Assembly: GCA_907165135.1 (NCBI GenBank)
Contig: CAJRAX010000012.1
Coordinates: forward strand, 1 to 35,216
DNA from: Oikopleura dioica
Taxonomy: Eukaryota; Animalia; Chordata
Reading direction: 5' to 3'
Length of the DNA stretch: 35,216 nucleotides
The translations under genes were made by a program, and so were the position numbers. The notes under the pieces were generated by a model. It was not told the origin of the DNA, did no database searches, and was given only the letters and a program-made list of their open reading frames with translations. How positions within the stretch are numbered: position 1 is the first letter of the stretch; every line of letters starts with the position of its first letter. Of the stretch, positions 1 to 33,744 are shown one piece after another.

Positions 1-424
1 TTCGATTAAAATGAACTCAACATCATCTTAAAACGCCAAAAACGCATCAGAATATTTTTGCGATGAAAATGAACTCAACATCATCTAAAATTGCCAAAAA
101 CGCATCAGAATATTTTATCGATGAAAATGAACTCAACATCATCTAAAACGCCAAAAACGCATCAGAATATTTTTTCGATTAAAATGAACTCAACATCATC
201 TAAAACGCCAAAAAACGCATCAGAATATTTTTCGATGAAAATGAACTCAACATTATCTAAAAACGCCAAAAACGCATCAGAATATTTTTTCGATGAAAAT
301 GAACTCAACATCATCTTAAAAGGCCAAAAAACGCATCAGAATATTTTTTCGATGAAAATGAACTCAACATCATCTAAAAACGCCAAAAAATGCATCCGAA
401 TATTTTTCCGATGTAAATGAACTC
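1..424 (+). repeat. ~59-bp tandem satellite, A-rich strand on +
   Basis: Head-to-tail copies of GATGAAAATGAACTCAACATCATCTAAAAACGCCAAAAA(A)CGCATCAGAATATTTTT(T)C; the array runs off the window start. Confidence 0.98.
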
Positions 425-1442
425 TGATGCCAATTAGCTGCAAATTAATCTCTAAGCTAGAATCCTGCGAAGAATGAGGCTAAAATTCGAAACGTGGCTG
501 TATTATTTTGGGTTTGAAGAGAGTGATTTTTAAATTTTCAAAATTTCAATTTCGCATTTCGCGCAGGTGCTATTACTTCCAAATAAGGCGCAGCGCATTT
601 CGCGCCGATGTTTTTCTTTCCAAATTAGGCGCAGCGCTTTCGCGCATTTGTTTTCTTCGCTGATTTCAATTTCGCTCCAACAGCCACGTTCGCTTCAAAT
701 TTTATCGCAAGAATCGAATTTAATCAATAAGTTCAATTTCCAACTATGTTGCCATATCCCTTATCAATAAAAATTCTATTCGTTCATATTTTTACCAAAG
801 CCAGTTCCATGTTCGTTGTCAGTCCATTGCGTTGTCGTTGTCGTTGAAGAAGAAGTCGCCGCCATTGTTGAAGCTGCAGTTTTGTCGGTTTTAAGGAGAA
901 TGGTCAGTTAATCCTAAAGCGAGCCAAAAAGGTGTTCAATCAATTTTGCCTACCAGGAGCACTTACAGACAGCGCCATCCCGAGGAGCACGGGGTCACAC
1001 TGTCAAGCCGCTTAAAGCGGAACTCAGCTAGAGGATGAATTTATCATGCAACAGCTTCGTTGTAGTTGAAGAAGAATACCAATTGATTTGTCCAATTGTC
1101 GAAAAGATGTTGTCGTTTGAAAGAGTCAGCTTGATTCATCAAATAATAATTACCAGAGCAGAATATTGAAAAACTAAAGTGTGAGCACTAGAATTTGTTA
1201 ACAAAAACCGTCGAAACGGGTGGCTAATGTGCCTTTTTTGAGTGTGAAATAACGCGTACGTTATGAAGGAAAAATAGAGATTTTATGAACTCATGCAATA
1301 TCCGAGATTTGGCTCCAAAATCATCAGAACAATTTAACCGTGAATTTCATGCTTAATCAACCTAATTGGCGCAAAATTATTTGTGAGAAGTAAATTCAAT
1401 TTTTATTTTTTTTTCTCTTGGTTCTTTCCCGTATTCGTATCA
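425..1442 (-). mobile_element. Solo LTR (1018 bp) of a subfamily related to element 1
   Basis: Termini TGATG...TATCA (TG..CA). 5-bp TSD AACTC at 420-424 and 1443-1447. Colinear similarity to element 1 LTR 6574-7632 in the same orientation. No internal domain. Confidence 0.93.
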
Positions 1443-2700
1443 AACTCAACATCATCTAAAAACGCCAAAAAACGCATCAGAATATTTTTTCGATGAAAAT
1501 GAACTCAACATCATCTAAAAACGCCAAAAACGCATCAGAATATTTTTTCGATGAAAATGAACTCAACATCATCTAAAAACGCCAAAAAACGCATCAGAAT
1601 ATCTTTTCAATGAAAATGAACTCAACATCATCTTAAAACGCCAAAAAACGCATCAGAATCTTTTCTTGATGAAAATGAACTCAACATCATCTAAAAACGC
1701 CAAAAAACGCATCAGAATATTTTTTCGATTAAAATGAACTCAACATCATCTAAAAGCGCCAAAAAACGCATCAGAATATTTTTTCGATGAAAATGAACTC
1801 AACATCATCTAAAAACGCCGAAAAACGCATCAGAATATTTTTCCGATGAAAATGAACTCAACATCATCTTAAAAGGCCAAAAAACGCATCAGAATATTTT
1901 TTCGATGAAAATGAACTCAACATCATCTAAAAACGCCAAAAAACGCATCAGAATATTTTTTCGATGAAAATGAACTCAACATCATCTAAAAACGCCAAAA
2001 AACGCATCAGAATATTTTTCCGATGAAAATGAACTCAACATCATCTAAAAACGCCAAAAACGCATCAGAATATTTTTCGATTAAAATGAACTCAACATCA
2101 TCTAAAAACGCCAAAAACGCATCAGAATATTTTTCGATGAAAATGAACTCAACATCATCTAAAAACGCCAAAAACGCATCAGAATATTTTTAAATGAAAA
2201 TGAACTCAACATTATCTAAAAACGCCAAAAACGCATCAGAATATTTTTCGATGAAAATGAACTCAACATCATCTTAAAAAGGCCATAAAACGCATCAGAA
2301 TATATTTTCGATGAAAATGAACTCAACATCATTTAAAAACGCCAAAAAACGCATCAGAATATTTTTTCGATGAAAATGAACTCAACATCATCTAAAAACG
2401 CCAAAAAATGCATCAGAATATTTTTCCGATGTAAATGAACTCAACATCATCTAAAAACGCCAAAAAACGCATCAGAATATTTTTTCGATGAAAATGAACT
2501 CAACATCATCTAAAAACGCCAAAAACGCATCAGAATATTTTTCGATGAAAATGAACTCAACATCATCTAAAAACGCCAAAAAACGCATCAGAATATTTTT
2601 TCAATGAAAATGAACTCAACATCATCTTAAAACGCCAAAAAACGCATCAGAATCTTTTCTCGATGAAAATGAACTCAACATCATCTAAAAACGCCAAAAA
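1443..2700 (+). repeat. ~59-bp satellite, + orientation
   Basis: Resumes at the TSD; about 21 monomers up to the inversion junction at 2700/2701. Confidence 0.98.
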
Positions 2701-5700
2701 TTTCATTTTCATCGCAAAAATATTCTGATGCGTTTTTTGGCGTTTTTAGATGATGTTGAGTTCATTTTCATCGAAAAAATATTCTGATGCGTTTTTTGGC
2801 GTTTTTAGATGATGTTGAGTTCATTTTCATCGAAAAAATATTCTGATGCGTTTTTTGGCGTTTTTAGATGATGTTGAGTTCATTTTCATCGAAAAAATAT
2901 TCTGATGCGTTTTTGGCGTTTTAAGATGATGTTGAGTTCATTTTCATCGAAAAAATATTCTGATGCGTTTTTTGGCGTTTTTAGATGATGTTGAGTTCAT
3001 TTTCATCGAAAAAATATTCTGATGCGTTTTTTGGCGTTTTTAGATGATGTTGAGTTCATTTTCATCGAAAAATATTCTGATGCGTTTTTTGGCGTTTTTT
3101 GATGATGTTGAGTTCATTTTCATCGAAAAAATATTCTGATGCGTTTTTGGCGTTTTTAGATGATGTTGAGTTCATTTTCATCGAAAAAATATTCTGATGC
3201 GTTTTTTGGCGTTTTTTGATGATGTTGAGTTCATTTTCATCGAAAAAATATTCTGATGCGTTTTTTGGCGTTTTTAGATGATGTTGAGTTCATTTTCATC
3301 GAAAAAATATTCTGATGCGTTTTTTGGCGTTTTTAGATGATGTTGAGTTCATTTTCATCGAAAAAATATTCTGATGCGTTTTTGGCGTTTTTAGATGATG
3401 TTGAGTTCATTTTCATCGAAAAAATATTCTGATGCGTTTTTTGGCGTTTTTAGATGATGTTGAGTTCATTTTCATCGAAAAATATTCTGATGCGTTTTTG
3501 GCGTTTTAAGATGATGTTGAGTTCATTTTCATCGAAAAATATTCTGATGCGTTTTTTGGCGTTTTTAGATGATGTTGAGTTCATTTTCATCGCCAAAAAA
3601 TATTCTGATGCGTTTTTGGCGTTTTTAGATGATGTTGAGTTCATTTTCATCGAAAAATATTCTGATGCGTTTTTGGCGTTTTTAGATGATGTTGAGTTCA
3701 TTTTCATCGGAAAAATATTCTGATGCATTTTTTGGCGTTTTTAGATGATGTTGAGTTCATTTTCATCGAAAAATATTCTGATGCGTTTTTGGCGTTTTTA
3801 AATGATGTTGAGTTCATTTTCATCGAAAAATATTCTGATGCGTTTTTGGCGTTTTAAGATGATGTTGAGTTCATTTTCATCGAAAAATATTCTGATGCGT
3901 TTTTTGGCGTTTTTAGATGATGTTGAGTTCATTTTCATCGAAAAATATTCTGATGCGTTTTTTGGCGTTTTAAGATGATGTTGAGTTCATTTTCATCGAA
4001 AAATATTCTGATGCTTTTTTGGCGTTTTTAGATGATGTTGAGTTCATTTTCATTGAAAAAATATTCTGATGCGTTTTTGGCGTTTTTTTTTTGATGATGT
4101 TGAGTTCATTTTCATCGGAAAAATATTCTGATGCGTTTTTTGGCGTTTTTAGATGATGTTGAGTTCATTTTCATCGAAAAAATATTCTGATGCGTTTTTG
4201 GCGTTTTTAAAATGATGTTGAGTTCATTTTCATCGAAAAATATTCTGATGCGTTTTTGGCGTTTTAAGATGATGTTGAGTTCATTTTCATCGAAAAAATA
4301 TTCTGATGCGTTTTTGGCGTTTTTAGATGATGTTGAGTTCATTTTCATCGAAAAAATATTCTGATGCGTTTTTGGCGTTTTAAGATGATGTTGAGTTCAT
4401 TTTCATCGAAAAAATATTCTGATGCTTTTTTGGCGTTTTAAGATGATGTTGAGTTCATTTTCATCGAAAAAATATTCTGATGCTTTTTTGGCGTTTTAAG
4501 ATGATGTTGAGTTCATTTTCATCGAAAAATATTCTGATGCTTTTTTTGGCGTTTTTAGATGATGTTGAGTTCATTTTCATCGAAAAAATATTCTGATGCT
4601 TTTTTGGCGTTTTTAGATGATGTTGAGTTCATTTTCATCGAAAAATATTCTGATGCGTTTTTGGCGTTTTTGATGATGTTGAGTTCATTTTCATCGGAAA
4701 AATATTCTGATGCGTTTTTGGCGTTTTTAGATGATGTTGAGTTCATTTTTATCGAAAAAATATTTTGATGCGTTTTTTGGCGTTTTTTGATGATGTTGAG
4801 TTCATTTTCATCGAAAAAATATTCTGATGCGTTTTTTGGCGTTTTTAAAATGATGTTGAGTTTATTTTCATCGAAAAAATATTCTAATGCGTTTTTTGGC
4901 GTTTTAAGATGATGTTGAGTTCATTTTCATCGAAAAAATATTCTGATGCTTTTTTTGGCGTTTTTAGATGATGTTGAGTTCATTTTCATTGAAAAAATAT
5001 TCTGATGCGTTTTTTGGCGTTTTTTGATGATGTTGAGTTCATTTTCATCGGAAAAATATTCTGATGCGTTTTTTGGCGTTTTTAGATGATGTTGAGTTCA
5101 TTTTCATCGAAAAAATATTCTGATGCGTTTTTGGCGTTTTTTGATGATGTTGAGTTCATTTTCATCGAAAAAATATTCTGATGCGTTTTTTGGCAATTTT
5201 AGATGATGTTGAGTTCATTTTCATCGCAAAAATATTCTGATGCGTTTTTTGGCGTTTTTAGATGATGTTGAGTTCATTTTAATCGAAAAAATATTCTGAT
5301 GCGTTTTTGGCGTTTTTTGATGATGTTGAGTTCATTTTCATCGCAAAAATATTCTGATGCGTTTTTTGGCGTTTTTAGATGATGTTGAGTTCATTTTAAT
5401 CGAAAAAATATTCTGATGCGTTTTTTTGGCGTTTTTTGATGATGTTGAGTTCATTTTTATCGAAAAAATATTCTGATGCGTTTTTGGCGTTTTTAGATGA
5501 TGTTGAGTTCATTTCCATCGAAAAAATATTCTGATGCGTTTTTGGCGTTTTTAGATGATGTTGAGTTCATTTTCATCGAAAAATATTCTGATGCGTTTTT
5601 GGCGTTTTTAGATGATGTTGAGTTCATTTTCAAAAAAAATATTCTGATGCGTTTTTGGCGTTTTTAGATGATGTTGAGTTCATTTTCATCGAAAAAATAT

Positions 5701-6382
5701 TCTGATGCGTTTTTGGCGTTTTTAGATGATGTTTGAGTTCATTTTAATCGAAAAAATATTCTGATGCGTTTTTTGGCGTTTTTAGAGGATGTTGAGTTCA
5801 TTTTCATCCAAAAATATTCTGATGCATTTTTTGGCGTTTTTAGATGATGTTGAGTTCATTTTCATCGAAAAATATTCTGATGCGTTTTTCGGCGTTTTTA
5901 GATGATGTTGAGTTCATTTTCATCGAAAAAATATTCTGATGCGTTTTTGGCGTTTTTAGATGATGTTGAGTTCATTTTCATCGAAAAATATTCTGATGCG
6001 TTTTTGGCGTTTTTAGATGATGTTGAGTTCATTTTCATCGGAAAAATATTCTGATGCGTTTTTTGGCGTTTTTAAATAATGTTGAGTTCATTTTCATCGA
6101 AAAAATATTCTGATGCGTTTTTGGCGTTTTTAAATGATGTTGAGTTCATTTTCATCGAAAATATATTCTGATGCGTTTTATGGCGTTTTAAGATGATGTT
6201 GAGTTCATTTTCATCGAAAAAATATTCTGATGCGTTTTTGGCGTTTTTGATGATGTTGAGTTCATTTTCATCGAAAAAGTATTCTGATGCGTTTTTGGCG
6301 TTTTTGATGATGTTGAGTTCATTTTCATCGAAAAAATATTCTGATGCGTTTTTCGGCCTTTTAAGATGATGTTGAGTTCATT
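2701..6382 (-). repeat. ~59-bp satellite, inverted orientation
   Basis: Monomers read as the reverse complement (GATGATGTTGAGTTCATTTTCATCGAAAAAATATTCTGATGCG...). Confidence 0.98.
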
Positions 6383-6391
6383 CATCTTCAA

Positions 6392-6573: not shown

Positions 6574-7632
6574 TGATGCCAATTACTCTAATTTATGACT
6601 CTCTAATCTAACTGCGTCTTGCAAAGGATAAGGCCTTAAAATACGAAATGTGGCTTTATTATTTTGGTTATGAAGAGAGTGAAATTGCAATACAAATTTT
6701 TCAGAATTGCAAATTTTGCAGGTGCAAATATTTCCAAATAAGGCATTTCGCGCATTTCGCGCATATGTTTTTCTTTTCAATAATGACGCGGCGCTTTCGC
6801 GCCATTGTTATTTTCTTTTCATCAAATTGGTCGCAATCGCCACGCTCGTAATTATTGTTTTTTCTTGGTCAAAGTTAATTTAAAATCATATCAAGAGATC
6901 AACTTCCCACTATGTGGCCATATCACTCTTGATAGAATTTTTTATCAATTTTAATTTTACTTGGTCCAAGTCCGTTTCCATAATCGTTGTCAGTCCATTG
7001 CGTCGTCGTTGTCGTCGTTGTAGTAGCTGGAGGTGTCGCCGCCATCGTTGAAGCTGCAGTTTTGTCGGTTTTGAGGAAAATGGTCAGTAGTCCTAAAGCG
7101 AGCCAAAAAAGTGTTCAATCAATTTTGCCTACCAGGAGCACTTACAGACAGCGCCATCCCGCGGGTCACGGGGTCACACTGTCAAGCCGCAGGAGCGGAA
7201 CTCAGCTAGAGGATGATAATTCATGCAACAGCTCCGTTGAAATCATAGAAGAGAGCCAATTGAAGTATTTTCCTATAAGCAGAATAATGCATTTCCAAAG
7301 CAGTCCGAGTCGTTGTTGATATCAAGGAAGAGACGAATTGTTTCATCAAAAATAATTACCAGTCAGAAAGAATAAATTGAACACTAGAAAGTTAAATAAA
7401 ACCGCCGAAACGGGTGGCTAAGGTGCCTTTAGAGAATGTGAAATAACGCGTACGTTATAAATGAGAAATATAGATTTTGATGAACTCATGCTATCCAAAG
7501 ATTTGGCTCCATAAATCTTCAGTTCGTTTAACTAGTGATTTTCATGCAAAATCAACCTAATTGGCGAAATTCGGGCCGTGAGTGGAAGGATTCAATTTTT
7601 ATCTTTTATGTTCTTTTTCGCTATTCTTATCA
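6574..7632 (-). repeat. Element 1 3' LTR (1059 bp)
   Basis: Direct repeat of 13369-13971 with 4 substitutions over the 603 shared bp; termini TGATG/TATCA. Confidence 0.95.
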
Positions 7633-7706
7633 GTATGACCCGTTGTGGGTATCTTTTTTTATTATTATAATTTGGAGCTTCTTTTACGAAAAAAAACTAT
7701 TGAATC

Positions 7707-10700
7707 TTAAAATTTTGGTCCAAAAAAAAGCTCGTTGTTTTTTCTTAGATGATTTGGATACAGTTGTTCAAAGGAAATTTTAACAAATTCGATCATTTCA
7801 GTTTTGTTTTGAATAGCAGTTTTTGGAAGTTTGTATTCAGAAATCAGGACCTTTAATTCGGGTTTTGTCAAATCGTAAAGAGTTTTCTCCTTTTTCAAGT
7901 TTAGAACTGAAAAAAACAAAAACTCTCCAGATTCGCTTTTTCGCCAATTAGGGTGATTCTTTCGGATATACTCTCTTATTTTAATTCTTAATTCACCTAC
8001 AGATTCCGTTGTAGTATAAAAGACCTCAAACTTATACAAAATATACCTAAGGGCTTCTCTCGTTAGCTCTCCTAGTTTCAAAATACACCCTTTCTCAATG
8101 TCCTCATCCTCCCTAATTCGTTCTTCAATATTTTTGAAAAATTCAATATCCTTATTCTCAAATTTAAAAGCGATAGAAAGATTAAAATTTTGCTCACATA
8201 TCATTTCTGAACAATCACTGGCTTCAGAATAAGAATTTTCCATATCTAAAATTTCTAAATTTGGAATTTTTGAAGAGGGATTCGAATCTTTTGATGATTC
8301 TCTTTCTCTTTTTCGATCATTTTGTAGGCCTTCACCCTCGTTTGGATTACTTAATTCAAGTTCTCCCTCCCGATTAGCCGTTATGTCCAATTTGTCATAT
8401 GAAATTAGATGTTCCGAATTATTATCAATCTGATTATGAACCGTTTCTGTCTCAATTTCAGAATCAAGTGTGACTTCCCAATGAGAATGCTCTTCTATTT
8501 CCCATTCAGAATCACAAATCGAATTCGATTCTCGTGGCAAAAAATCGTCAGGTTTTGGGATCTCATCCATAATTGACGAATTTATAGTTCCATTTACCGT
8601 TATATTTTGGTTCTCTATAATTGAAACAATAGAGTCTTCTTCGTGAAAAGAGTCAATTGATTCTAGTGTTTCAATTATAAAATCTGTAAATATATTTTCA
8701 AAAATTCCTTCGACAGAAAGAGAGACGAGCTTTTCGTACGCATTCTCCAGAAACTTTTCCTCGGAAGATAAACTTACTGGGGAATACGAACAATTTGGAA
8801 AATTTTCATGGAATCCTGAAGAATAGTTTTCGGACGTTTCTGTATCATATTGAGCGTCGGGGGAAAAACTCGGAATGCCCGAGCTTACTGTAATTTCCTT
8901 CCTATCATTATATTTTTTGAGATGATCGGCGTGTCTCCGATATTCTTTTTCCCCAGATCTGACCGTGTACCACGTCCCCTCCGTGGAGCTACTAGTAACT
9001 TCATATGGGCCTAAAAAAGCTGGTTTTTTAGCGTGAAAATTTTTAATGAGAACTTGATCACCGACCTTATATTTAACAAATTTAGGATTAGAAAATTTTT
9101 CAAGCCTGATTTGCTTCTCTTCGTCCAATAATTTCTTGATCGATTCAAAATTAATTTGTTCTCGTTCATGGTAAATCCTGTAATTTGGGTCAAAAATATC
9201 ATGAGGGTGCTTAAATCCAAATTGAAGCGAGAATGGAGATGTTTTAGTGACCGAATGCTGTGAAGTATTTAAATCATGGACAATTTCTTGCAAAAATAAA
9301 TCCCAGTTTTTATAATCACATTTAGCTCGCAGTCTACTTTTTAGGGTTCTATTAAAATTTTCAACTTAACCATTTGTTGATGGATGTCTCGGTGGTGTAA
9401 AATGGGGCTCAATCGAATTTTCTTTCATAAATTTTTCCATTTCAGAATGCTCTCGAGCATTATCTAGAATAACCTTTTTTGGGAAATAAGGATTTTTGAA
9501 AATAATGCTCTTAAATTTTCCAAGAAGATATTTTGAATCTCGAGATTTAAGCGGTTCACAATAGCCAAATTTAGAGAAAAAATCAATCATAACTAAAACA
9601 TATTTATTTCCAAAATCAGTTGGAGGAAGCGTGATAAGGTCAAATCCAAAAACTTCGAAGGGTCCGTCTGGAGTTTTGAATGATAATATTGGAGCTTTAT
9701 TGGGATGAAAATTAGGCTTATCTTTCTGGCAAAACGGGCAAGTTTTTATAAATTCTTTTATACCATTACGCATTCGCGGCCAAATATATTTCATTGAAAT
9801 TTTTGCAAAAACTTGGTCGATTCCTGCGTGGCAATAGTCATGATAATTTTTTATTATTTCATTTTCGATATCCTTCGGCACGAGAACGCGACGATTATTA
9901 AATTCGTCAATGTAGGCTATTTCTCCACTTTCCAAAAAGGTCAATTTATCTCTCAAAAACGAATAAAAATTTATGTCCCCTTTGGGATTATTTGGCCATC
10001 TATCAATTTGCACGTATTTTCGAATTTCACTAAGTGTTGGGTCTAATTTTTGGATTTCACAAAATTTTTCTTGGGAAATTTGAATCGAATTAAGACTGAC
10101 CTTATGTGAATTATTTCTACTCAAACAATCGCTAATTTTCATTTTTGATGAAGATTTTTGAATAGTTCGAAAGCAGAATCCCTGAATTTCAGTAATCCAT
10201 CTAGCAATTTTTTGATTATTTGTCCTAAGCGATCTTATATATTTTATATTCGAATTGTCTGTTATCCAGTCGAATTCCGTATAAGAGAAATAAACAGCCC
10301 ATTTTGTCATACAAGTTTTTGCAGAGTATAATTCCTTTTCGATAATTGTGTACTTTGACTGTGTTTCATTAAAATTTCCACTATTATAACCAACAGGGAC
10401 CAAACAATCTGTAGAATGATGATGATTCTCGTCCCGACATTTTTGATCACAAATATACAGTACTCCGCCGTAGCCAAGAGAGGATGCATCTGTTTCTAAA
10501 ACAAAAACGCCTTGATCGGCTGGGGGAATTCTCAACTTCATTGCATTATTGCAAATTATTTCTTTGAGTTGTAAAAATGCTTGGGTGGCCTCATTCGTCC
10601 AGCAGAACGAATTTCTATATGTTTTTGTTATCGGTAATGCAATTGCCGCAAAATTTTTAATAAATCTTCTATGATAATTTAAAAGTCCAAAAAGACTTTG

Positions 10701-12365
10701 TGCACCTTCCTTAGACGTCGGGATTTTTAGGTTTTCAATCGCCTTGATTTTGTCTTTTGTTGGGGAAATTTCACCATTGGAAATAAAATAGCCGCAAAAA
10801 TTTACAGACCGCGTAAAAAACGAAGCTTTTCGTGAATGAATACGCAAATTATTAGCATCAAGAATCATGAAAAATTTCTTTAAATTTAATAAATGCTCCT
10901 CTTCCGTTTTGCTATGAACTAAAAGATCATCCATATAGGGTAAAATTGCTGTTTTATCTACCCCTTTCAAGGCTTGGTCAATGATTCGCATGAAAAAAGC
11001 GGGCGCATTGCGGCAGCCCATCGGCATTCTCAAAAATCTAAATTGGCCGTGTTCAGTCGTAAACGCTGTCTTGTTTTTCGACTCTTCAGTCAATTCTATT
11101 TGATGAAAGCCTTTGATGAGATCGACCGAACTAAAAATTTTGCTATTCTCCAAATAAGATAGTGAGTCTTCTAAATTTGGCAAGGGATGATGAATTTGTA
11201 TTGTTGCATCGTTAAGCTTTCGAAAATCAATTACGAGGCGCCATCGCCCGTCTTTTTTTCTGACCAATATTGCAGGGCTATTCCAGGGGCTCGTACATTT
11301 TTCGATTATTTTATTCCCCGTAAATTTATCCAAAATATTTTTCCATTCCCGACGCAAACTAAATGGTTGTCTATAAGGCTGTGAAGAAATCGGGCACTGT
11401 GTATTTGTATCAATTGAAAATTTTTCAATAGAACACGCAGGAAGGGGATCATCATCATCAAGAAATAAATGTGTAACAATGTCTAAAAGGGCGTAAAAAT
11501 CTTTTTCTACTTCTGGCGAGTTAATTTTACCGACTGAGATATTTTCCATATTTTTATTATTTGTGTTTTTGATTTGGGCAATTTCGACTATTTCATGTAA
11601 TTTAGCAAAAACTGTTCCAGCTGGAATACGAATTGTTGTGTCTGTTGGATTAATAACGAGTAACCGAAAAATTGGGGAGTCTTTATCAACAATTTGTAAA
11701 CTTGGAATAAGTTGCAGTTTTGAATTTCCGAGATTTGAATTTTCAAACGAGAGACTCATAGTTTTATTGAAATTTTTAACCGAAAGATCAATTAATCTTT
11801 CTGATTTTCCTCTGAAGGAAAACGTTTCTGTTGAGAATGCGTCATATTCTTCAATCGACTCATTTCTTAAATTATCAGTAGCATTTTCATCCGAACTAAT
11901 TAAATTAAGATTCGCGAACCGTTCAACCGGGCCTGCTTGAATCAATTTTTTACGATGAAGATTTATCAAAATTTCATTATCAAGAATCGCTGGCACTCCC
12001 AAAATAGGGCTAAGGTTATCCGAGACCACATAAAACCAGGACTTCCCCCAGGAAACATTTTCAATAATAAATTCGGTTTCGATTTTGCCAAAAATTTCAA
12101 TTTTTCCGCCGGTATAATTAACCGCCTCCATTTTTGTTTTTTCAATTTTTTTGTTTTTTGGAACATATTTTTTACAAATACAATTTAATTGTGAGCCTGT
12201 GTCAAGTAAAAAACGTACATGTGAATCAAAAATTTTAGCATTTACAAAAAATTGCTCGCCAATTTTATTTACAGAAATTTTCGGGATTGAAATTTGACCA
12301 GAATTTGTCCCGAAATTTAGTTTTTTTGCTCGACAGATCCCTGTTTCTCCCGACGCTTCAAACAA
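7707..12365 (-). pseudogene. pol: Element 1 pol (protease, RT, RNase H, integrase, GPY motif, long C-terminal tail) with one premature stop
   Basis: FLLDTGSQ (PR, ~12201), SPWNSP/LVIDFRKLN/YMDD (RT, YMDD 10926-10937), ETDASSLGYGGVL (RH), H-H-C-C zinc finger, FDLITLP..LDNARE..NG*VE (DDE), FLGPY (~9004-9012). ORFs 9366-12365 and 7707-9293 are in the same frame, split only by TAA at 9366-9368 (probable CAA>TAA). Confidence 0.93.
12279..12326 (-). promoter_or_regulatory. Putative -1 ribosomal frameshift signal gag/pol (A AAA AAC plus stem-loop)
   Basis: Heptamer A AAA AAC (12326-12320) directly before the gag TAA; pol is in the -1 frame; hairpin TTTCGGGA/TCCCGAAA plus AAATT/AATTT with loop CTGGTCA. 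Confidence 0.8.
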
Positions 12366-13328: not shown

Positions 13329-13352
13329 TTTGTTACCTTGAAATTGGAGTCG

Positions 13353-13368
13353 CCGCTAGTGGTCACCA
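13353..13368 (-). promoter_or_regulatory. Primer-binding site, tRNA-Trp type
   Basis: TGGTGACCACTAGCGG directly after the 5' LTR; TGGTGACC is complementary to the GGUCACCA 3' end of eukaryotic tRNA-Trp. Confidence 0.8.
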
Positions 13369-17650: not shown

Positions 17651-17674
17651 GCTCTGGTCAAGCTTTCAATCCGA
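17629..17674 (+). promoter_or_regulatory. Putative -1 frameshift signal (G GGA AAC plus stem-loop)
   Basis: Heptamer 17629-17635 in the gag frame; the -1 frame reads SSGQAFNPK, homologous to element 1 NSGQISIPK; stem 17642-17653 with 17661-17674, loop CTGGTCA. Confidence 0.8.
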
Positions 17675-23000: not shown

Positions 23001-26000
23001 TATTCTGATGCGTTTTTGGCGTTTTTAGATGATGTTGAGTTCATTTACATCGGAAAAATATTCTGATGCGTTTTTGGCGTTTTTAGATGATGTTGAGTTC
23101 ATTTTCATCGAAAAATATTCTGATGCGTTTTTTGGCGTTTTTAAAATGATGTTGAGTTCATTTTCATCGAAAAAATATTCTGATGCATTTTTCAACTTTT
23201 AAGATGATGTTGAGTTCATTTTCATCAAAAAAATATTCTGATGCGTTTTTGGCGTTTTTAGATAATGTTGAGTTCATTTTCATCGGAAAAATATTCTGAT
23301 GCGTTTTTTGGCGTTTTTAGATGATGTTGAGTTCATTTTCATCGAAAAATATTCTGATGCGTTTTTTGGCGTTTTTAGATGATGTTGAGTTCATTTTAAT
23401 CGAAAAATATTCTGATGCGTTTTTTGGCGTTTTTAGATGATGTTGAGTTCATTTTCATCGAAAAAATATTCTGATGCGTTTTTGGTAATTTTAGATGATG
23501 TTGAGTTCATTTTTATTGAAAAAATATTCTGATGCGTTTTTTGGCGTTTTAAGATGATGTTGAGTTCATTTTCATCGAAAAAATATTCTGATGCGTTTTT
23601 TGGCGTTTTTTGATGATGTTGAGTTCATTTTCATCGAAAAAATATTCTGATGCGTTTTTTGGCGTTTTAAGATGATGTTGAGTTCATTTTCATCGAAAAA
23701 ATATTCTGATGCGTTTTTTGGCGTTTTTAGATAATGTTGAGTTCATTTTCATCGAAAAAATATTCTGATGCGTTTTTTGGCGTTTTAAGATGATGTTGAG
23801 TTCATTTTCATCGAAAAAATATTCTGATGCTTTTTTTGGCGTTTTTAGATGATGTTGAGTTCATTTTCATTGAAAAAATATTCTGATGCGTTTTTTGGCG
23901 TTTTTTGATGATGTTGAGTTCATTTTCATCGGAAAAATATTCTGATGCGTTTTTGGCGTTTTTAGATGATGTTGAGTTCATTTTCATCGAAAAAATATTC
24001 TGATGCGTTTTTGGCGTTTTAAGATGATGTTGAGTTCATTTTAATCGAAAAAATATTCTGATGCGTTTTTGGCGTTTTTAGATGATGTTGAGTTCATTTT
24101 CATCGAAAAAATATTCTGATGCGTTTTTGGCGTTTTTAGATGATGTTGAGTTCATTTTCATCGAATAAATATTCTGATGCGTTTTTTGGCGTTTTTTGAT
24201 GATGTTGAGTTCATTTTCATCGAAAAAATATTCTGATGCGTTTTTTGGCGTTTATAGATGATGTTGAGTTCATTTTCATCGGAAAAATATTCTGATGCGT
24301 TTTTCGGCGTTTTTAGATGATGTTGAGTTCATTTTCATCGAAAAAATATTCTGATGCGTTTTTGGCGTTTTTAGATGATGTTGAGTTCATTTTAATCGAA
24401 AAAATATTCTGATGCGTTTTTGGCGTTTTTAGATGATGTTGAGTTCATTTTCATCGAAAAAATATTCTGATGCGTTTTTTGGCGTTTTTAGATGATGTTG
24501 AGTTCATTTTCATCGAAAAAATATTCTGATGCGTTTTTGGCGTTTTTAGATGATGTTGAGTTCATTTTCATCGAAAAAATATTCTGATGCGTTTTTTGGC
24601 GTTTTTAGATGATGTTGAGTTCATTTTCATCGAAAAAATATTCTGATGCGTTTTTGGCGTTTTTAGATGATGTTGAGTTCATTTTCATCGGAAAAATATT
24701 CTGATGCGTTTTTTGGCGTTTTTAAGATGATGTTGAGTTCATTTTCATCGAAAAAATATTCTGATGCGTTTTTGGCGTTTTTAGATGATGTTGAGTTCAT
24801 TTTCATCGAAAAAATATTCTGATGCGTTTTTGGCGTTTTAAGATGATGTTGAGTTCATTTTCATCGAAAAAATATTCTGATGCGTTTTTTGGCGTTTTTA
24901 GATGATGTTGAGTTCATTTTCATCGAAAAAATATTCTGATGCGTTTTTGGCGTTTTTAGATGATGTTGAGTTCATTTTCATCGAAAAAATATTCTGATGC
25001 TTTTTTTGGCGTTTTTAGATGATGTTGAGTTCATTTTCATTGAAAAAATATTCTGATGCGTTTTTTGGCGTTTTTTGATGATGTTGAGTTCATTTTCATC
25101 GAAAAAATATTCTGATGCGTTTTTTGGCGTTTTTTGATGATGTTGAGTTCATTTTCATCGAAAAAATATTCTGATGCGTTTTTTGGCGTTTTTAGATGAT
25201 GTTGAGTTCATTTTCATTAAAAAAATATTCTGATGCGTTTTTTGGCGTTTTTAGATGATGTTGAGTTCATTTTAATCGAAAAAATATTCTGATGCGTTTT
25301 TTGGCGTTTTAAGATGATTTTGAGTTCATTTTCATCGCAAAAATATTCTGATGCGTTTTTGGCGTTTTTAGATGATGTTGAGTTCATTTTAATCGAAAAA
25401 TATTCTGATGCGTTTTTGGCGTTTTTGATGATGTTGAGTTCATTTTCATCGAAAAAATATTCTGATGCGTTTTTGGCGTTTTTAGATGATGTTGAGTTCA
25501 TTTTCATCGAAAAATATTCTGATGCGTTTTTGGCGTTTTTGATGATGTTGAGTTCATTTTCATCGAAAAAATATTCTGATGCGTTTTTTGGCGTTTTTAG
25601 ATGATGTTGAGTTCATTTTCATTAAAAAAATATTCTGATGCGTTTTTTGGCGTTTTTAGATGATGTTGAGTTCATTTTCATCGAAAAAATATTCTGATGC
25701 GTTTTTTGGCGTTTTAAGATGATTTTGAGTTCATTTTCATTGAAAAAAATATTCTGATGCGTTTTTTGGCGTTTTTAGATGATGTTGAGTTCATTTTCAT
25801 CGAAAAAATATTCTGATGCGTTTTTCGGCGTTTTTAGATGATGTTGAGTTCATTTTCATCGAAAAAATATTCTGATGCGTTTTTTGGCCTTTGAAGATGA
25901 TGTTGAGTTTATTTTCATCGGAAAAATATTCTGATGTTTTTTGGCGTTTTTAGATGATGTTGAGTTCATTTTCATCGAAAAAAGATTCTGATGCGTTTTT

Positions 26001-26699
26001 GGCGTTTTAAGATGATGTTGAGTTCATTTTCATCGAAAAAATATTCTGATAACATTTTTGGCGCTTTTAGATGATGTTGAGTTCATTTTAATCACAAAAA
26101 TATTATGATGCGTTTTTGGCGTTTTTAGATGATGTTGAGTTCATTTTCATTGCTCAAAAATATTCTGATGCGTTTTTTTGCGTTTTTAGATGATGTTGAG
26201 TTCATTTTCATCGAAAAAATATTCTGATGCGTTTTTGGCGTTTTTTTGTGATGATGTTGAGTTCATTTTCATCGGAAAAATATTCTGATGCGTTTTTTGG
26301 CGTTTTTAGATGATGTTAAGTTCATTTAAATCGGAAAAATATTCTGATGCATTTTTGGCGTTTTTAGATGATGTTGAGTTCATTTTCATCGAAAAATATT
26401 CTGATGCGTTTTTGGCGTTTTTAGATGATGTTGAGTTCATTTTCATCGAAAAATATTCTGATGCGTTTTTCGGGTTTTAAGATGATGTTGAGTTCTATTT
26501 TCATCGGAAAAATATTCTGATGCGTTTTTCGGCGTTTAAAGATGATGTTGAGTTCATTTTCATCTAAAAAATATTCTGATAAAGTTTTTGGCGATTTTAG
26601 ATGATGTTGAGTTCATTTTAATCGAATTGACAAAAAAATATTCTGATGCGTTTTCAGGCGTTTTTAGATGATGTTGAGTTCCATTTTCATCGAGAAAAG
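20044..26699 (-). repeat. ~59-bp satellite, inverted orientation (~6.6 kb)
   Basis: Reverse-complement monomers, very homogeneous until ~25900, then increasingly irregular. Confidence 0.98.
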
Positions 26700-26716
26700 C
26701 CGTAGTTGAAAAAGCT

Positions 26717-29700
26717 GCATCAGAATATTTTTCGATGAAAATGAACTCAACATCATCTTAAAACGCCAAAAACGCATTAGAATATTTTTCGATGAAAATG
26801 AACTCAACATTATCTAAAAACGCCAAAAACGCATCAGAATATTTTTCGATGAAAATGAACTCAACATCAATGAAGGAAAAGGCCAAAAACGCATCAGAAT
26901 TTATTTTTTCGATGAAAATGAACTCAACATCATTTCGCAAAAACTTCCAAAAACGCATCAGAATATTTTTTCGATGACAATGAACTCAACATCATTCGAC
27001 AAAACGCAAAAAACGCATCAGAATATTTTTTCGATGAAAATGAACTCAACATCATCTAAAAACGCCAAAAACGCATCAGAATATTTTTCCGATGAAAATG
27101 AACTCAACATCATCAAAAACGCCAAAAACGCATCAGAATATTTTTTCAATGAAAATGAACTCAACATCATCTAAAAACGCCAAAAAAGCATAAGAATATT
27201 TTTATGATGAAAATGAACTCAACATCATTTTAAAACGCCAAAAACGCATCAGAATATTTTTTCGATGACAATGAACTCAACATTATCTAAAAACGCCAAA
27301 AACGCATCAGTGTTATTTTTTCGATGAAAATGAACTCAACATCATCTTAAAAGGCCAAAAACGCATCAGAATATTTTTCGATGAAAATGAACTCAACATC
27401 ATTTTAAAAACGCCAAAAACGCATCAGAATATTTTTTCGATGAAAATGAACTCAACATCATCTGAAAAACGCCAAAAATGCATCCGAATATTTTTCCGAT
27501 AAATGAACTCAACATCATCTAAAAACGCCAAAAACGCATCAGCGCTTTTTTCGATGAAAATGAACTCAACATCATCTAAAAACGCCAAAAGCGCATCAGA
27601 ATATTTTTTGATGAAAATGAACTCAACATCATCTAAAAACGCCAAAAACGCTATCGATATTTTTTCAATGAAAATGAACTCAACATCATCTTTAAACGCC
27701 AAAAACGCATCAGAATATTTTCTCGATGAAAATGAACTCAACATCATCTAAAAACGCCAAAAACGCATCAGAATATTTTTCGATGAAAATGAACTCAACA
27801 TTATCTAAAAACGCCAAAAACGCATCAGAATATTTTTTCGATGAAAATGGGGTTCAACATCATCTTAAAACGCCAAAAACGCATCAGAATATTTTTTCGA
27901 TTAAAATGAACTCAACATCATCTTAAAACGCCAAAAACGCATCAGAATATTTTTGCGATGAAAATGAACTCAACATCATCTAAAATTGCCAAAAACGCAC
28001 TCGAATATTTATTTCGATGAAAATGAACTCAACATCATCTAAAAACGCCAAAAACGCATCAGAATTTTTTTCGATGAAAATGAACTCAACATTATCTAAA
28101 AACGCCAAAAACGCATCTTATTTTTTCGATGAAAATGAACTCGACATCATTTTAAAACGAAAAACGCATCAGAATATTTTTCGACCTAAATGAACTCAAC
28201 ATCATCTGAAAACGCCAAAAACGCATCAGAATTTTTTCGATGAAAATGAACTCAACATCATCTAAAAACGCCAAAAACGCATCAGAATATTTTTTCGATG
28301 AAAATGAACTCAACATCATCTGAAAAACGCCAAAAACGCATGGAATTTTTTTCTGCATGAAAATGAACTCAACATCATCTTAAACGCTCAAAAACGCATC
28401 AGAATCTTTTCTCGATGAAAATGAACTCAACATCATCTAAAACGCCCAAAAAGGGTGCATCAGAATATTTTTATGATGAAAATGAACTCAACATCATATC
28501 TAAAAACGCCAAAAACGCATCAGAATATTTTTTCGATGAAAATGAACTCAACATCATCTTAAAACGCCAAAAACGCATCAGAATTTTTTTCGATTAAAAT
28601 GAACTCAACATCATCTTAAAACGCCAAAAACGCATCAGAATATTTTTGCGATGAAAATGAACTCAACATCATCTAAAATGTGAAAAACGTTTCAGAATAT
28701 TTTTCGATGAAAATGAACTCAACATCATCTGAAAACGCCAAAAACGCATCAGAATATTTTTCCGATGAAAATGAACTCAACATCATCTGAAAAACGCGGG
28801 GAAAAACGCATCAGAATATTTTTTCGATGAAAATGAACTCAACATCATCTAAAAACGCAAGAAAGCATCAGAATATTTTTTCGGAAAATGAAAATGAACT
28901 CAACATCATCTTAAATTTTTCAAAAACGCATCTTCGAATTTTTCGATTAAAATGAACTCATTCATCATTTTGAAAACAAATCAACGCAAGTAAGAGCATA
29001 TTGCTTTTCGATGAGTCATGAACTCAACATCAATCTATAAAACGCCAAAAACGCATCAGAAGGTTTTTTCGATGAAAATGAACTCAACATCATCTTAAAA
29101 CGCCAAGTGCGCATCAGAATATTTTTCAAAATGAAAATAAACTCAACATTCATTCTTTTTCAAAACGCATCAGAATATTTTTCGATGAGAATGAACTCAA
29201 CATCATCTAAAAACGCCAAAAACGCATCAGAATGGTTTAATGAAAATGAACTCAACATCATCTAAAAACGCCAAAAACGCATCAAATCTTTTTTCAATGA
29301 AAATGAACTCAACGATCATCTAAAACGCCAAAAACGCATCATCAAGAATTTTTAATTAAAATGAACTCAACATCATGTAAAAACGAAAAACGATCAGAAT
29401 ATTTTTCGATGGCCATGATTAATTTCAACATAATCTTATAAACGCCAAAAACGCATCAGAATATTTTTTTAATGAAAATGAACTCAACATCATCTAGAAA
29501 ACGCCAAAAACGCATCAGAATTTTTTTCGATTAAAATGAACTCAACATCATCTTAAAACGCCGAAAACTGCATTTGAATACCTTTTTCGAATAGGAAATG
29601 AACTGTAAGACATTCATCGCTTAAAACATCTAAAACGCATACGAATATTTTCTTCATTGTTTTAATGTACTCAACATCATCTAAAACGCCAACAAACGCA

Positions 29701-30432
29701 GTCGAACTTTCTCGATGAAAATGAACTCAACATCATCAAAAACGCTCCAACAATTTCGCATCAGAATAACTCTTTTTTTTCGATGGAAATGAACTCAACA
29801 TCATCTGAGAAAACGCCAAAAACGCATCAGAATAATTTTTCGATAAAAATGAACTCAACATCATCAAAAACGCCAAAAACGCATCAGAATATTTTTCGAT
29901 AAAATGAACTCAACATCATCTAAAAACGCATCAGAATTTTTTGCGATGAAAATGAACTCAACATCATCAAAAACGCCAAAAACGCATCAAAATTTCCGTC
30001 CATTTTCGATTAAAATGAACTCAACATCATCTTAAAACGCCAAAAACGCATCAGAATATTTTTGCGATGAATGAACTCAACATCATCGAAAATTGGAAAA
30101 ACGCATCAGAATATTTTATCGATGAAAATGAACTCAACATCATCTAAAAACGCTTTAAAAAACGCATCAGAATATATTTTTCGATTAAAATGAACTCAAC
30201 ATCATCTAAAAACGCCAAAAACGCATCAGAACGCTTTTTTCGATGAAAATGAACTCAACATTATCTAAAAACGCCAAAAACGCATCAGAAAATTTTTTCG
30301 ATGTCCTTGAACTCAACATCATCTTAAAAGGCCAAAATCGTCATCAGAATATTTTTTCGATGAAAATGAACTCAACATCATTTAAAAACGCCAAAAAATG
30401 CATCCGAATATTTTTCCGATGTAAATGAACTC
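26717..30432 (+). repeat. ~59-bp satellite, + orientation, error-rich or diverged
   Basis: Same monomer with many non-recurrent indels and scrambled patches. Confidence 0.95.
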
Positions 30433-31513
30433 TGATGCCAATTAGCTGCAAATTAGTTCTCTAAGCTAGAATCCTGCGAAGAATGAGGCTAAAATTCGAA
30501 ACGTGGCTGTATTATTTTGGGTTTGAAGAGAGTGATTTTTAAATTTTCAAAATTTCAATTTCGCATTTCGCGCAGGTGCTATTACTTCCAAGTAAGGCGC
30601 AGCGCATTTCGCGCCGATGTTTTTCTTTCCAAATTAGGCGCAGCGCTTTCGCGCATTTGTTTTCTTCGCTGATTTCAATTTCGCTCCAACAGCCACGTTC
30701 GCTTCAAATTTTATCGCAAGAATCGAATTTAATCAATAAGTTCAATTTCCAACTATGTTGCCATATCCCTTATCAATAAAAATTCTATTCGTTCATATTT
30801 TTACCAAAGCCAGTTCCATGTTCGTTGTCAGTCCATTGCGTTGTCGTTGTCGTTGAAGAAGAAGTCGCCGCCATTGTTGAAGCTGCAGTTTTGTCGGTTT
30901 TAAGGAGAATTTTCAGTTAATCCTAAAGCGAGGAAAAAAGGTGATCAATCAATTTTGCCTACCAGGAGCACTTACAGACAGCGCCATCCCGAGGAGCACG
31001 GGGTCAACACTGTTCAAGCCGCTTAAAGCGGAACTCACTTAGAGGATGAATTTATCATGCAACAGCTTCGTTGTAGTTGAAGAAGAATACCAATTGATTC
31101 GTCCAATATGTCGAAAAGATTTTTGTTGTCGTTTGTAAGAGTCAGCTTGATTCATCAATTAATAATTTGAAGAGCTCGAATATTGAAAAACTAAAGTGTG
31201 AGCACATGTCTTTCAATAAAATCAGAGCCAAGAATACTGGATAGAATTTGATTCTCCCCAGCAGACAACTGAAAACCGTCGAAACGGGTGGCTAATATTG
31301 ACCTTTTGAGTCGAAATAACGCGTACGTTATGAAGGAAAAATAGAATTTTATGAACTCATGCAATATCCGAGATTTGGATCGTAAAAATCATCAGAACAA
31401 TTTAACCGTGAATTTCATGATTTCAACCTAATTGGCTGAAAAAATTTGTGAGAAGTAAATTTGAAAATTTTTATTTTTTTCTCTTGGTTCTTTCCCGTCA
31501 CTTCTTAGTATCA
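30433..31513 (-). mobile_element. Second copy of the solo LTR at 425-1442 (same insertion site)
   Basis: Same TSD AACTC and the same flanking variant monomers (TGCATCCGAATATTTTTCCGATGTAAATGAACTC). First ~470 bp nearly identical, remainder noisy. Confidence 0.92.
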
Positions 31514-32467
31514 AACTCAACATCATCTAAAAACGCCTTGCATCAGATTATTTTTTCGATGAAAATGAACTCAACTTTCATCTAAAAACGCCAAAAACGC
31601 ATGGGCAATTTTTTCGATGAAAATGAACTCAACATCATCTAACGACGCCAAAAACGCATCAGAATATCTTTTCAATGAAAATGAACTCAATTTCATGGCC
31701 TTCGCCAAAAACGCATCAGAATTTTCTTGATGATCTGATGAACTCAACATCATCTAAAAACGCCAAAAATTGCATCAGTCGTTTTCTTTCGATTAAAATG
31801 AACTCAAGTTTTCATCTGCTTCGCGAAAAACGCATCAGAATATTTTTTCGATGAAAATGAACTTAGCATCATTTTGAAACGCCGAAAAACGCATGGAGAA
31901 TGTTTTTCCGATGAAAATGAACTCAACATCATCTCAAAAGGCTTCGAAAAACGCATCAGAATATCCTTTTTCGATGAAAATGAACTCAACATCATCTTAA
32001 AAACGAGAAAAAATTCATCAGAATATTTTTTCGATGAAAATGAACTCAACATCATCTAAAAACGCCAAAAACGCTTCAGATTTTTTTTTCGATGAAAATG
32101 AACTCAACATCATCTAAAAACGCTGAAAAACGCATCAGAATATTTTTTCGATTAAAATGAACTCAACATCATCTAAAAACGCCAAAAACGCATCAGAATA
32201 TTCCTTTTTCGATGAAAATGAACTCAACATCATCAAAAAACGCCTGAAAAACGCATCAGAATACTTTTTTAAATGAAAATGAACTCAACATTATCTAAAA
32301 ACGCCAAAAACGCATCAGAATATTTTTTCGATGAAAATGAACGTCAATTTTCATCTTGAAAAAGGCCATAAAACGCATCAGAATATATTTTCGATGAAAA
32401 TGAACTCAACATCATTTTAAAAACGCCAAAAAACGCATCAGTTGTATTCTTTCGATGAAAATGAACT
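31514..32467 (+). repeat. ~59-bp satellite, + orientation; noisy copy of 1443-2382
   Basis: Same succession of variant monomers (ATATCTTTTCAATG, TTCTTGATG, TTTAAATG..CATTATCT, GGCCATAAAACGCATCAGAATATATTTTC). Confidence 0.93.
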
Positions 32468-33744
32468 TGATACCTTTTCTGAGTCTCTTTTACTGCTGAT
32501 TGCAATTAACTATCAATTTTTAATCAAATTTTCTGCAAGAAAATACAAGAAAATATATTTTGCGGCGTTCAGAGGGAGATTTATTGTGAGACTGATTCAA
32601 AATAAAATTTGGCGGTGAGCGAAAATTTTAGCAGGTGCGCGAAAATGCATAACAAAGGCGAAAACAAAGACATAAACAAATGAAATTTCCTTTTTTGGAA
32701 ATAAGGCGCTTCAAGTTCATCCGGTGTATTTTTGAATCCATTTCGGATTTTGTATCTTCTTGCGGTTCGAGCCGGGTTCCCGAGCCGGAAGGGTTGAGTT
32801 TTCCAAAGTGAAGCGTTTTCTGAGTTTTTTCCGCCCAAAGAAGCCATTTTTTGTAAAAGAAGTAATTAGAATAAAGAATGTGAACATTTTAAAATAAAAT
32901 AATTTATAATCAAAATTGGTCAGTTATTTTAATCATAAATTAAGCGCAAAAGGTGATAACATAAATTAACAAGCATAAATAAAATTACAGTAAGAATTAA
33001 ATCACATAAAAATTACAGGTTAATAAAATCATATTAAAATTACAGTTAAAATAAAAATAACTTCGGCTCACCTTTCGGCAGTTACTGACGCAGTTCCCTT
33101 TGCCTTGGTAATTCGCGTCAAGCCTTATCGTTAATAAGGAACCGAAAAGGTCTCCCGTATCTGCTCAATCGCCCAAGGAGTGCTTTGTGAAGTTGATGAG
33201 TATGAAAGGAATGAAGAAGGAAAGATGACGGGAAGGTAGGACCCGTTTTCGTCGTCCGCGTCGATAGAGCATAGTCGTTGTTGATTTCAAATTAAACAGA
33301 ACAGAGTGAGAGCAAATCTATAGAATTAATGAAACAGGAGCAATCAGCGAATTTTTAACAATTATGCCAAAGTGAGGCAACATGCGAATTTGAAAATAAT
33401 TTTCATGCCATAATTTGCAAGCGGTTAGGGTTTTACATTGCTACAGTAGGAAGCTTTGCGTTAGAAAAAATGATTCTGAAATAATAAATGAACAGTAAGT
33501 ATGAAAGCACGCTTTATTTTTCCCCTAACCAAAGATTTTAAAGGATCTAAAGAAGATTTGATGAGAGCATTGTTGAGCGGAATAATCGACGCTATCTTTT
33601 TGAGTGAATTGACAAATTCAGATTTCGAATAAAATGAATTTTGGCCGTGAATCAGAACTACGACGGGTTGGAACTATTTTTCTTCCATTATTTTTTCCCG
33701 ATAAAGCACGTAGTTGAAGAGCAGCTGTTTCCCTAGTGGTATTA
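32468..33744 (-). repeat. Element 3 putative 3' LTR (~1277 bp)
   Basis: Left TGATACC and right GGTATTA form a 7-bp inverted repeat with one mismatch. The right boundary is inferred from a 20-nt flank motif shared with element 1; the partner LTR is not visible. Confidence 0.65.

Follow-up and report, generated by a model that had tools for sequence, protein, structure and literature searches.

Why should four retrotransposon insertions on one short scaffold all strike the same few base pairs of a satellite monomer? The question is raised by unplaced scaffold C17 of the Okinawa OKI2018_I69 assembly of the tunicate Oikopleura dioica (64.28 Mb in total, 19 scaffolds), which we analysed over its entire 35,216 bp and refer to as the window. 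Its content is a 59-bp satellite broken up by Ty3/gypsy (Tor-type) long terminal repeat (LTR) elements. With moderate confidence, we favour the reading that several families of one Ty3/gypsy (Tor-type) clade target a subtelomeric satellite family, and that a conserved tail at the end of their Pol protein acts as the tether.

Insertion positions within the satellite monomers

The A-rich strand of the 59-bp monomer begins GATGAAAATGAACTC. Below, the target-site duplications (TSDs) of the four window insertions are given with their offsets, measured from the first base of the TSD to the last G of a GGCG box on the T-rich strand (or, for the 163-bp satellite treated below, the plus strand).

420..424 and 1443-1447, solo LTR, AACTC at A-rich monomer positions 11-15 (junction print), offset +16
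6569-6573 and 13972-13976, element 1, ATCAT at A-rich monomer positions 19-23, offset +8
15224-15228 and 20044-20048, element 2, TTGAG (= CTCAA) at A-rich monomer positions 13-17, host array T-rich, offset +14
32463-32467, element 3, left-flank GAACT at A-rich monomer positions 10-14, offset +17

A preliminary description of the scaffold had reported these four duplications and monomer positions, and the junction prints match them exactly. Excising each window element together with one TSD copy restores an in-phase monomer. The chance of about 0.02 that had been estimated for four starts within 10 of 59 positions agrees with our simulation (p = 0.0165), and the insertions come, as had been stated, from divergent (sub)families: identity between the solo LTR and the element 1 LTR is 73%, and no nucleotide similarity links the LTRs of elements 2 and 3 to the others of the window.

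Beyond the window, events were collected from junction prints over about 300 kb of the genome, including the full length of scaffold C14 (79,680 bp); they form a sample, not an exhaustive annotation. Further events in the 59-bp satellite and its variants are as follows.

C14:37635, +8
C14:46353, +8
C14:65432-75669, +8
C14:54071, +7
C14:37309, about +15
C12:110903, +14
C15:48775, +12
C5:16098365, +19
C15:40415-48556, +16
C5:16101271, -17 (outlier)

Twelve of 13 events thus start at +7 to +19 (scan-statistic p = 5e-6), and an event found later on C15 brings this to 13 of 14. In the 163-bp satellite, which is represented by its consensus, the events near the box are these.

ATGAC, +14, four events from at least three families
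ACGAT, +11, two events
CGATG, +12, one event
ACCAT, +17, three events
ATAAC or ATAGC, +8, three events
ATTCA, +1, one event
GGGCG, -4, one event
TTGAC, -18, one event

Here 14 of 20 starts fall within -4 to +20 and 12 of 20 within +8 to +17, and neither figure was reached in any of 200,000 simulations. The narrow monomer zone proposed from the window is strengthened by this genome-wide sample, in two satellites. The two far-side events, at -17 and -18, occupy the equivalent place beyond the box in two different satellites.

Read on its plus strand, the 163-mer is similar to the T-rich strand of the 59-mer, and the satellites of 59, 66-71 and 163 bp have in common a core consisting of CGTTTTT(T)GGCG, a spacer of 18-25 bp rich in GATGAY, and (T)CATCGAAAAAA. 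The conserved box that contains GGCG is CGTTTTTKGGCG. With offsets anchored on GGCG, the 59-bp family averages about +12 and the 163-bp satellite about +11, whereas anchored on CATCG the two lie about 6 bp apart, which is weak evidence that the box rather than CATCG aligns the two satellites.

Independence and orientation of the events

The pentamer ATGAT of the 59-mer has been used by four families and ATGAC of the 163-mer by at least three, and the same sites are common to families whose LTRs cannot be aligned. Two elements with ATGAC duplications, on C5 and C13, have LTR pairs that are 99.4% and 99.6% identical within each element and 94% identical between elements. Because a copy made after insertion could not give such identities, these are separate events; the divergence between their flanks is that of ordinary monomers. 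Obvious duplicates (C14 versus C5, both solo LTRs of the window, and the tandem copies at 20-37 kb of C5) each entered the count a single time. One family was listed completely: its 13 LTR ends make up seven elements, and all seven lie in satellites.

Elements at C12 86366, 93951 and 101539 and at C5 20244-36920 are evenly spaced (about 7.6 kb, and about 6.8 kb plus 6 monomers, respectively); they are either tandem arrays of element plus satellite or the product of one site targeted repeatedly.

All four window insertions are antisense to the A-rich strand, as the preliminary description had noted, but genome-wide this bias disappears. In a common frame there are 8 sense and 5 antisense events in the 59-bp family and 6 sense and 13 antisense in the 163-mer, for a total of 14:18 (p = 0.6), or 14:19 with the later C15 event. 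The latter is a sister of element 2 (98-99% LTR identity) inserted at +16 in the orientation opposite to element 2, and on C14 the element 1 site ATCAT is filled in both orientations. The shared orientation of four out of four in the window is chance. Collection of genomic copies, the check that had been proposed, thus reproduced the zone and gave mixed orientations. Copies located mostly outside the 59-bp satellite had been named as evidence against targeting; most copies do lie elsewhere, in its sister satellites. The earlier observation is therefore partly confirmed and its interpretation partly supported.

Confinement of the clade to chromosome ends

The five large scaffolds, with names assigned from the scaffold set in PMC8008620, are listed here.

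C1, 17.09 Mb, likely the pseudoautosomal region
C2, 12.96 Mb, likely the X-specific region
C3, 2.92 Mb, likely the Y-specific region
C4, 14.53 Mb, likely chromosome 1
C5, 16.16 Mb, likely chromosome 2

Whole-assembly searches found LTR copies only in the first 10-180 kb of C1, C4 and C5, in the last 30-120 kb of C2, C3 and C5, and on C12-C15 and C18. Arrays of (CCCTAA)n stand at the start of C1, C3, C4, C5 and C13, which makes the LTR-bearing regions subtelomeric. Where they are not on unplaced scaffolds, the satellites are about 5-180 kb away from TTAGGG telomeres or scaffold ends. Most LTR copies sit in sister repeats of the 59-mer, above all in the 163-bp satellite, which is restricted to the same chromosome ends. 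The dyad 24-mer of the 59-mer has 397 assembly matches at up to one mismatch and, among the matches listed, all are on C14 and C17. Sister repeats of 66-71 bp occur on C5 (16.1 Mb), C12 and C15, and a 57-bp variant with the core common to the family is located at the start of C8.

A centromeric location of the satellites and elements was considered and rejected, as copies adjoin telomeres or sit on unplaced scaffolds. The idea of the 59-bp satellite as a centromere marker, and with it the analogy to centromeric retrotransposons of plants drawn in the preliminary description, is corrected by this location and by a tail that is not a chromodomain. The passages of PMC8008620 on this assembly describe the small scaffolds as highly repetitive, place retrotransposons and long-period tandem repeats in the subtelomeres, and state that a centromeric satellite was not identifiable, true centromere sequence being absent from the assembly.

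Searched with a 193-aa integrase query, the assembly yields about 80 matches of at least 44% identity. About 76 of these lie on unplaced scaffolds or no more than about 180 kb from a chromosome end, regions that we estimate at roughly 2% of the genome. The four interior matches belong to one family (C1 8.88 Mb, C4 5.25 Mb, C5 5.74 Mb and C5 14.80 Mb). Copies at C1 8.88, C4 5.25 and C5 5.74 Mb are flanked by unique DNA with no gap or satellite, and a position at centromere gaps was rejected for these three. Tor families with integrase identity of 29% or less are scattered through the chromosome interiors, many with long intact frames and identical copies, and gave no tail match. Since young interior insertions are thus visible in the assembly, their absence in the tail-bearing clade favours targeting over purging alone.

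Two structural features of these ends were also noted. LTRs, integrase and tail matches at C5 16124846-16153937 are mirrored around about 16.139 Mb, an arrangement that points to a large inverted duplication close to the chromosome 2 end. At C4 144188-145208 and 174066-175086, two LTRs with one ACGAT duplication stand 30 kb apart in opposite orientation and appear to be a single element split by inversion.

A conserved tail at the C-terminus of Pol

In intact copies the tail is contiguous with Pol (an open reading frame (ORF) of 1447 aa on C14, and frames of up to about 1690 aa in relatives). The order is reverse transcriptase (RT) and RNase H, integrase zinc finger and core, an SH3-like stretch, an acidic serine-rich linker of about 250 aa, and a conserved domain of about 150 aa. 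This domain has 92 matches in the genome, distributed at chromosome ends like the integrase matches, and an alignment of 17 sequences contains 14 invariant columns. A word-based protein search returned just four tail-bearing Pol proteins, all on metagenome contigs too short for flanks.

An AlphaFold2 model of the tail, built on this alignment (predicted local distance difference test score of 86) contains a duplicated strand-helix-helix unit. With an exhaustive structural aligner, the halves (residues 29-76 and 95-140) match the Rho N-terminal domain, SAP domains (Hcc-1, PIAS1, Tho1), the emerin LEM domain and MANF/CDNF. The tail is thus predicted to be two SAP/helix-extended-helix (HeH)-like repeats, by resemblance and not by proof of membership, and is a plausible candidate for the tether of integrase to its target.

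How the site may be chosen

For the tail and the box we infer the following roles. The tail would tether the intasome to the box, either by its own DNA binding or via a host protein located there. A two-fold symmetric intasome anchored in this way would strike to one side of the box, no more than about two helical turns away and in either orientation. Strand transfer, with a 5-bp stagger, takes place mostly 7-20 bp downstream of GGCG, often within GATGAY. A local preference of integrase for GATGAY-like sites would then select the exact bonds. The more specific proposal, which we put forward only tentatively, is that the tandem SAP/HeH-like tail is a new integrase targeting module that reads the box of about 12 bp, directly or via one host protein, and that sister families may have moved to other monomer zones through divergence of their tails. 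An inverted, degenerate copy of the box is found 12-30 bp away from the events at 74, 83 and 89 of the 163-mer. A simple correspondence in which one tail clade goes to the main zone and the other to 74-93 was rejected, as two members of the second clade are also in the main zone.

Several observations weigh against targeting through the tail and the box. In the 163-bp satellite, five of 20 events are elsewhere, with starts at monomer positions 33, 45, 74, 83 and 89, and one, at -18, is on the opposite side of the box. A tail-bearing family with about 55% integrase and 42% tail identity has unique-DNA flanks at three of four interior copies (the three that were read), and further insertions of this family are in another LTR and at a satellite position outside the zone. 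A more distant clade, whose tail match is faint, is dispersed, with a large part on the Y-specific scaffold. Because of these two groups, the tail alone gives no guarantee of fine targeting. One element-1-like copy sits nested at the border of polypurine tract and LTR of another element, outside the satellite. Searches of 17 tail members against Pfam gave nothing above threshold (best SAP, E = 0.073, in one of 17; Rho_N, E = 0.22), and Foldseek found no significant match of the model in the PDB. The fold matches of the halves are weak (Z 3.5-5.8, root-mean-square deviation 1.7-4.7 Å, mostly 1.7-3.8 Å), and a Z below 8 can reflect a common arrangement. Finally, the underlying assembly is a Nanopore assembly, and the regions are repeats.

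Among the alternatives, tethering to subtelomeric heterochromatin as a region, in the manner of Ty5, combined with a weak preference for A-Y-N-A-Y or GATGAY-like pentamers, fares best, and we regard it as unlikely. The commonest TSDs (ATGAT, ATGAC, ATAAC, ACGAT and ACCAT) are of this form, the two far-side events are CTGAT and TTGAC, and the 55% family is enriched in subtelomeres without fine specificity. However, ATGAC occurs twice in each 163-bp unit (1-5 and 66-70), yet all ATGAC events are at 1-5, and the duplications of the solo LTR, element 2 and element 3 (GAGTT, TTGAG and AGTTC on the T-rich strand) misfit the pentamer and are still in the zone.

Somewhat less probable again is that chromatin or DNA shape fixes the site, with the nucleosome phase or a bent or dyad stretch exposing the same bonds in each monomer and no sequence-reading tether. 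A GATG/CATC inverted repeat is present in the hit zone of both satellites (GATGA...TCATC in the 59-mer and CGATG-AC-CATCG in the 163-mer), the 163-bp unit is about one nucleosome repeat, the insertions cover about 20 bp rather than one bond, and orientation is random. The 59-bp unit, on the other hand, is too short for one nucleosome phase per monomer, yet its zone is identical; the agreement of the GGCG-anchored offsets between satellites, and the difference of the CATCG-anchored ones, also argue against shape, and other Tor families in the same arrays take other positions.

That there is no targeting, and that random insertions merely survive in gene-free satellites of a compact genome and are clustered via segmental duplication, is very improbable and already largely refuted by the LTR identities within and between elements, the complete family listing, the position statistics and the young Tor families with intact frames across the chromosome interiors of the same assembly, since selection is unable to pick a position within the monomer and the sites are common to families with unrelated LTRs. 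Duplication is nevertheless rife (the solo LTR occurs twice in the window, and C14 repeats the element 2 flank and C5 elements), and the insertion polymorphism of other Tor families described in a passage of PMC4402516 points to turnover under strong purifying selection.

Elements and satellite arrays of the window

Arrays were mapped with Tandem Repeats Finder and a k-mer map. The features of the window are listed below.

1..424, plus strand, 59-bp satellite, A-rich on plus (both methods)
425..1442, minus strand, solo LTR, reading TGATGCC...GTATCA on plus, with a 41-bp tandem repeat at 553-654
1443..2700, plus strand, 59-bp satellite, A-rich on plus, turning T-rich at 2700/2702
2702..6382, minus strand, 59-bp satellite, T-rich on plus
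About 6383-6391, palindromic flip of the array, followed by A-rich satellite at 6392-6573
6574..13971, minus strand, element 1, near full-length Ty3/gypsy (Tor-type)
6574-7632, minus strand, 3' LTR of element 1
7710..8159, minus strand, tail domain of element 1, the final 150 aa of the Pol/integrase reading frame 7707-9293
9366..12365, minus strand, pol of element 1, with protease, RT, RNase H, and integrase zinc finger and core (Pfam)
12450..13196, minus strand, ORF in gag position of element 1, 248 aa
13369-13971, minus strand, 5' LTR of element 1, with a deletion of about 455 bp
13972..15228, 59-bp satellite separating elements 1 and 2, A-rich up to 14378 and T-rich from 14380 on
15229..20043, plus strand, element 2, internally deleted, with gag bearing a CCHC-like motif and an RT fragment, without integrase
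15229-16380, plus strand, 5' LTR of element 2
19060-20043, plus strand, 3' LTR of element 2, first 170 bp absent
20044..26698, minus strand, 59-bp satellite, T-rich on plus, 113 copies, with a flip at about 26699-26716
26717..30432, plus strand, 59-bp satellite, A-rich on plus, more degenerate (82% matches)
30433..31513, minus strand, second solo LTR copy, TSD AACTC, identical flank variants
31514..32467, plus strand, 59-bp satellite, A-rich on plus
32468..35216, minus strand, element 3, cut by the contig end, with just one end in the window
32468-33744, minus strand, 3' LTR of element 3
33899-34351, minus strand, tail domain of element 3, within ORF 33872-35206

The elements classify by sequence as Ty3/gypsy (Metaviridae) LTR retrotransposons. 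Pfam domains in the element 1 pol (RVP, RVT_1, RT_RNaseH, Integrase_H2C2, rve) follow the Ty3/gypsy order, and the intact C14 relative has RVT_1, RT_RNaseH, Integrase_H2C2 and rve in order, with no protease hit in Pfam. LTR pairs are at least 99% identical and have TGAT...ATCA termini, each TSD is 5 bp long, and the 5' LTR is followed by TGGTG... at the position of the primer-binding site (PBS). A CCHC zinc knuckle was identified in gag (zf-CCHC, E = 1.9e-5 in the intact relative, weak in element 2); the 248-aa ORF in gag position of element 1 has no Pfam match. Membership of the chromoviruses or the CRM group was rejected, as Pfam found no chromodomain or CR motif and the tail model consists of two helix-extended-helix units. 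A separate third ORF encoding env was also rejected: ORF 7707-9293 of element 1 aligns to the end of the uninterrupted Pol frames (1447-1690 aa) of relatives.

The orientation of the solo LTR was assigned from relatives whose PBS side is known. Its second copy, at 30433-31513, was counted as a duplicate because the flank variants match those of the first copy, and it is a segmental duplication of one event, not a separate insertion. In element 1, the pol frame is ended by a stop not found in intact relatives, whose open frames are 1500-1690 aa. The LTR pair has two common segments of 301 and 305 bp (99.3% identical), and the roughly 455 bp missing from the 5' LTR exist in the 3' LTR and in relatives.

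For element 2 the 5' end is the least certain boundary, as its first 170 bp are not in its own 3' LTR. We accepted the LTR start at 15229 because the TTGAG duplication matches and the same 170-bp segment is found upstream of the 3' LTR in the sister copy on C15. The internal deletion takes out RNase H, integrase and tail; at its junction, within 19000-19060 of the window, the YMDD codons of the RT active-site region are joined to the 3' LTR 170 bp past its start. At 15229-15398, the first 170 bp of the LTR look like decayed satellite monomers, and the corresponding stretch of the C14 duplicate of this locus (C14 54908-55068) is even more satellite-like; this may be target DNA captured into U3 or a product of gene conversion. 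Within the LTR of the C14 element 2 copy there is a 1.37-kb insert (C14 55794-57160); its terminal inverted repeats measure about 150 bp, and it is probably a small DNA transposon. An LTR at C14 37635-37820 has two monomer-like stretches in its first 185 bp, in which the target zone is nearly complete but lacks the GGCG box. Derivation of the satellite from LTRs was rejected: this one C14 LTR and the 170 bp of element 2 do not form a general pattern.

The satellite array changes strand four times, at about 2700, 6385, 14379 and 26705. The flip at 6385 is a near-palindrome with a rare variant monomer on both arms, as a fold-back or breakage-fusion event would leave. This variant, in which CGGCCTTTTAAG replaces TGGCGTTTTTAG and changes the GGCG box, occurs in 7 copies among an estimated 580 monomers (window 6354, 15206, 20321 and 21147; C14 46336, 54885 and 65415), or in 6 without the one located where C14 duplicates the element 2 locus. 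It adjoins three separate insertion events and one palindromic flip, and could be a preferred target or a piece of a local higher-order repeat.

Four public read runs from three studies contain this stretch and were examined over 13300-15700. The satellite exceeds the LTRs in word depth by two to three orders of magnitude. The Logan contigs are unitigs of about 100 bp that end at the border of LTR and satellite, and neither confirm nor refute the junctions and array flips. The element 1 LTR was found in all four runs and the element 2 LTR has mostly zero depth in two of them, with just short stretches covered, which suggests a polymorphic young family. Several metagenome runs (marine, seawater, biofilm and other) contain 3-17% of the words of the searched stretch of LTR end plus satellite.

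Comparison with known systems

Like the Tor elements described in passages of PMC4402516 and PMC8008620, the elements studied here occur in O. dioica and have a Ty3/gypsy layout, TSDs of 4-5 bp and near-identical LTRs. Unlike the Tor families of PMC4402516, which according to the passages on their structure carry an env ORF, these have the end of Pol as their third ORF. Text searches of the two papers returned no passage on monomer-level targeting, and in PMC4402516 the passages returned mention integrase once (in the methods, for a Pol alignment) and contain no tandem or telomere wording. Neither a SAP-type integrase tail nor targeting at the level of the monomer turned up for Oikopleura in full-text literature searches.

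If the tail is what we propose, these would be the first sequence-addressed LTR retrotransposons of a chordate. Some retroelements persist in compact genomes by targeted integration, and safe-harbour gene delivery takes integrase tethers as models. We know of very few LTR elements that choose sites at base-pair scale, and of none in a chordate. Here a whole clade does this in an animal with a 64-Mb genome, its target being a box plus a zone of about 20 bp in three satellite designs. Such targeting also explains the chromosome ends of Oikopleura as mosaics of satellites and Tor elements.

The non-LTR elements R1 and R2 of ribosomal DNA and TRAS and SART of telomeric repeats use a sequence-specific endonuclease and target-primed reverse transcription and insert in fixed orientation. 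Like them, the elements described here are retroelements that occupy one position in a tandem repeat unit; unlike them, they use an integrase and insert in random orientation. With the plant CRM chromoviruses they have in common that a gypsy lineage resides inside satellite arrays and that the integrase C-terminus is implicated, but Pfam found no chromodomain or CR motif in them and their arrays are subtelomeric, not centromeric.

In Ty5 of Saccharomyces, a C-terminal targeting domain of integrase binds Sir4 and directs the element to telomeric and silent chromatin. Here too an LTR element is held to chromosome ends, putatively also via the integrase C-terminus. Ty5 is, however, a copia-type element with regional targeting by a motif of a few residues, whereas here we find a predicted folded domain of 150 aa and clustering at base-pair scale. 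Further close parallels are Tf1 of Schizosaccharomyces pombe, which integrates beside Sap1-bound sites, and Ty3 of budding yeast, which integrates at the start sites of RNA polymerase III (Pol III). As in these Ty3/gypsy elements, insertion occurs in either orientation, with a 5-bp TSD, at a fixed short distance from a bound DNA site, binding of the box being putative. In contrast to both, the landmark is a box in a satellite monomer and not a promoter, and the proposed tether is a built-in tandem SAP/HeH-like tail rather than a chromodomain or contact with a Pol III factor.

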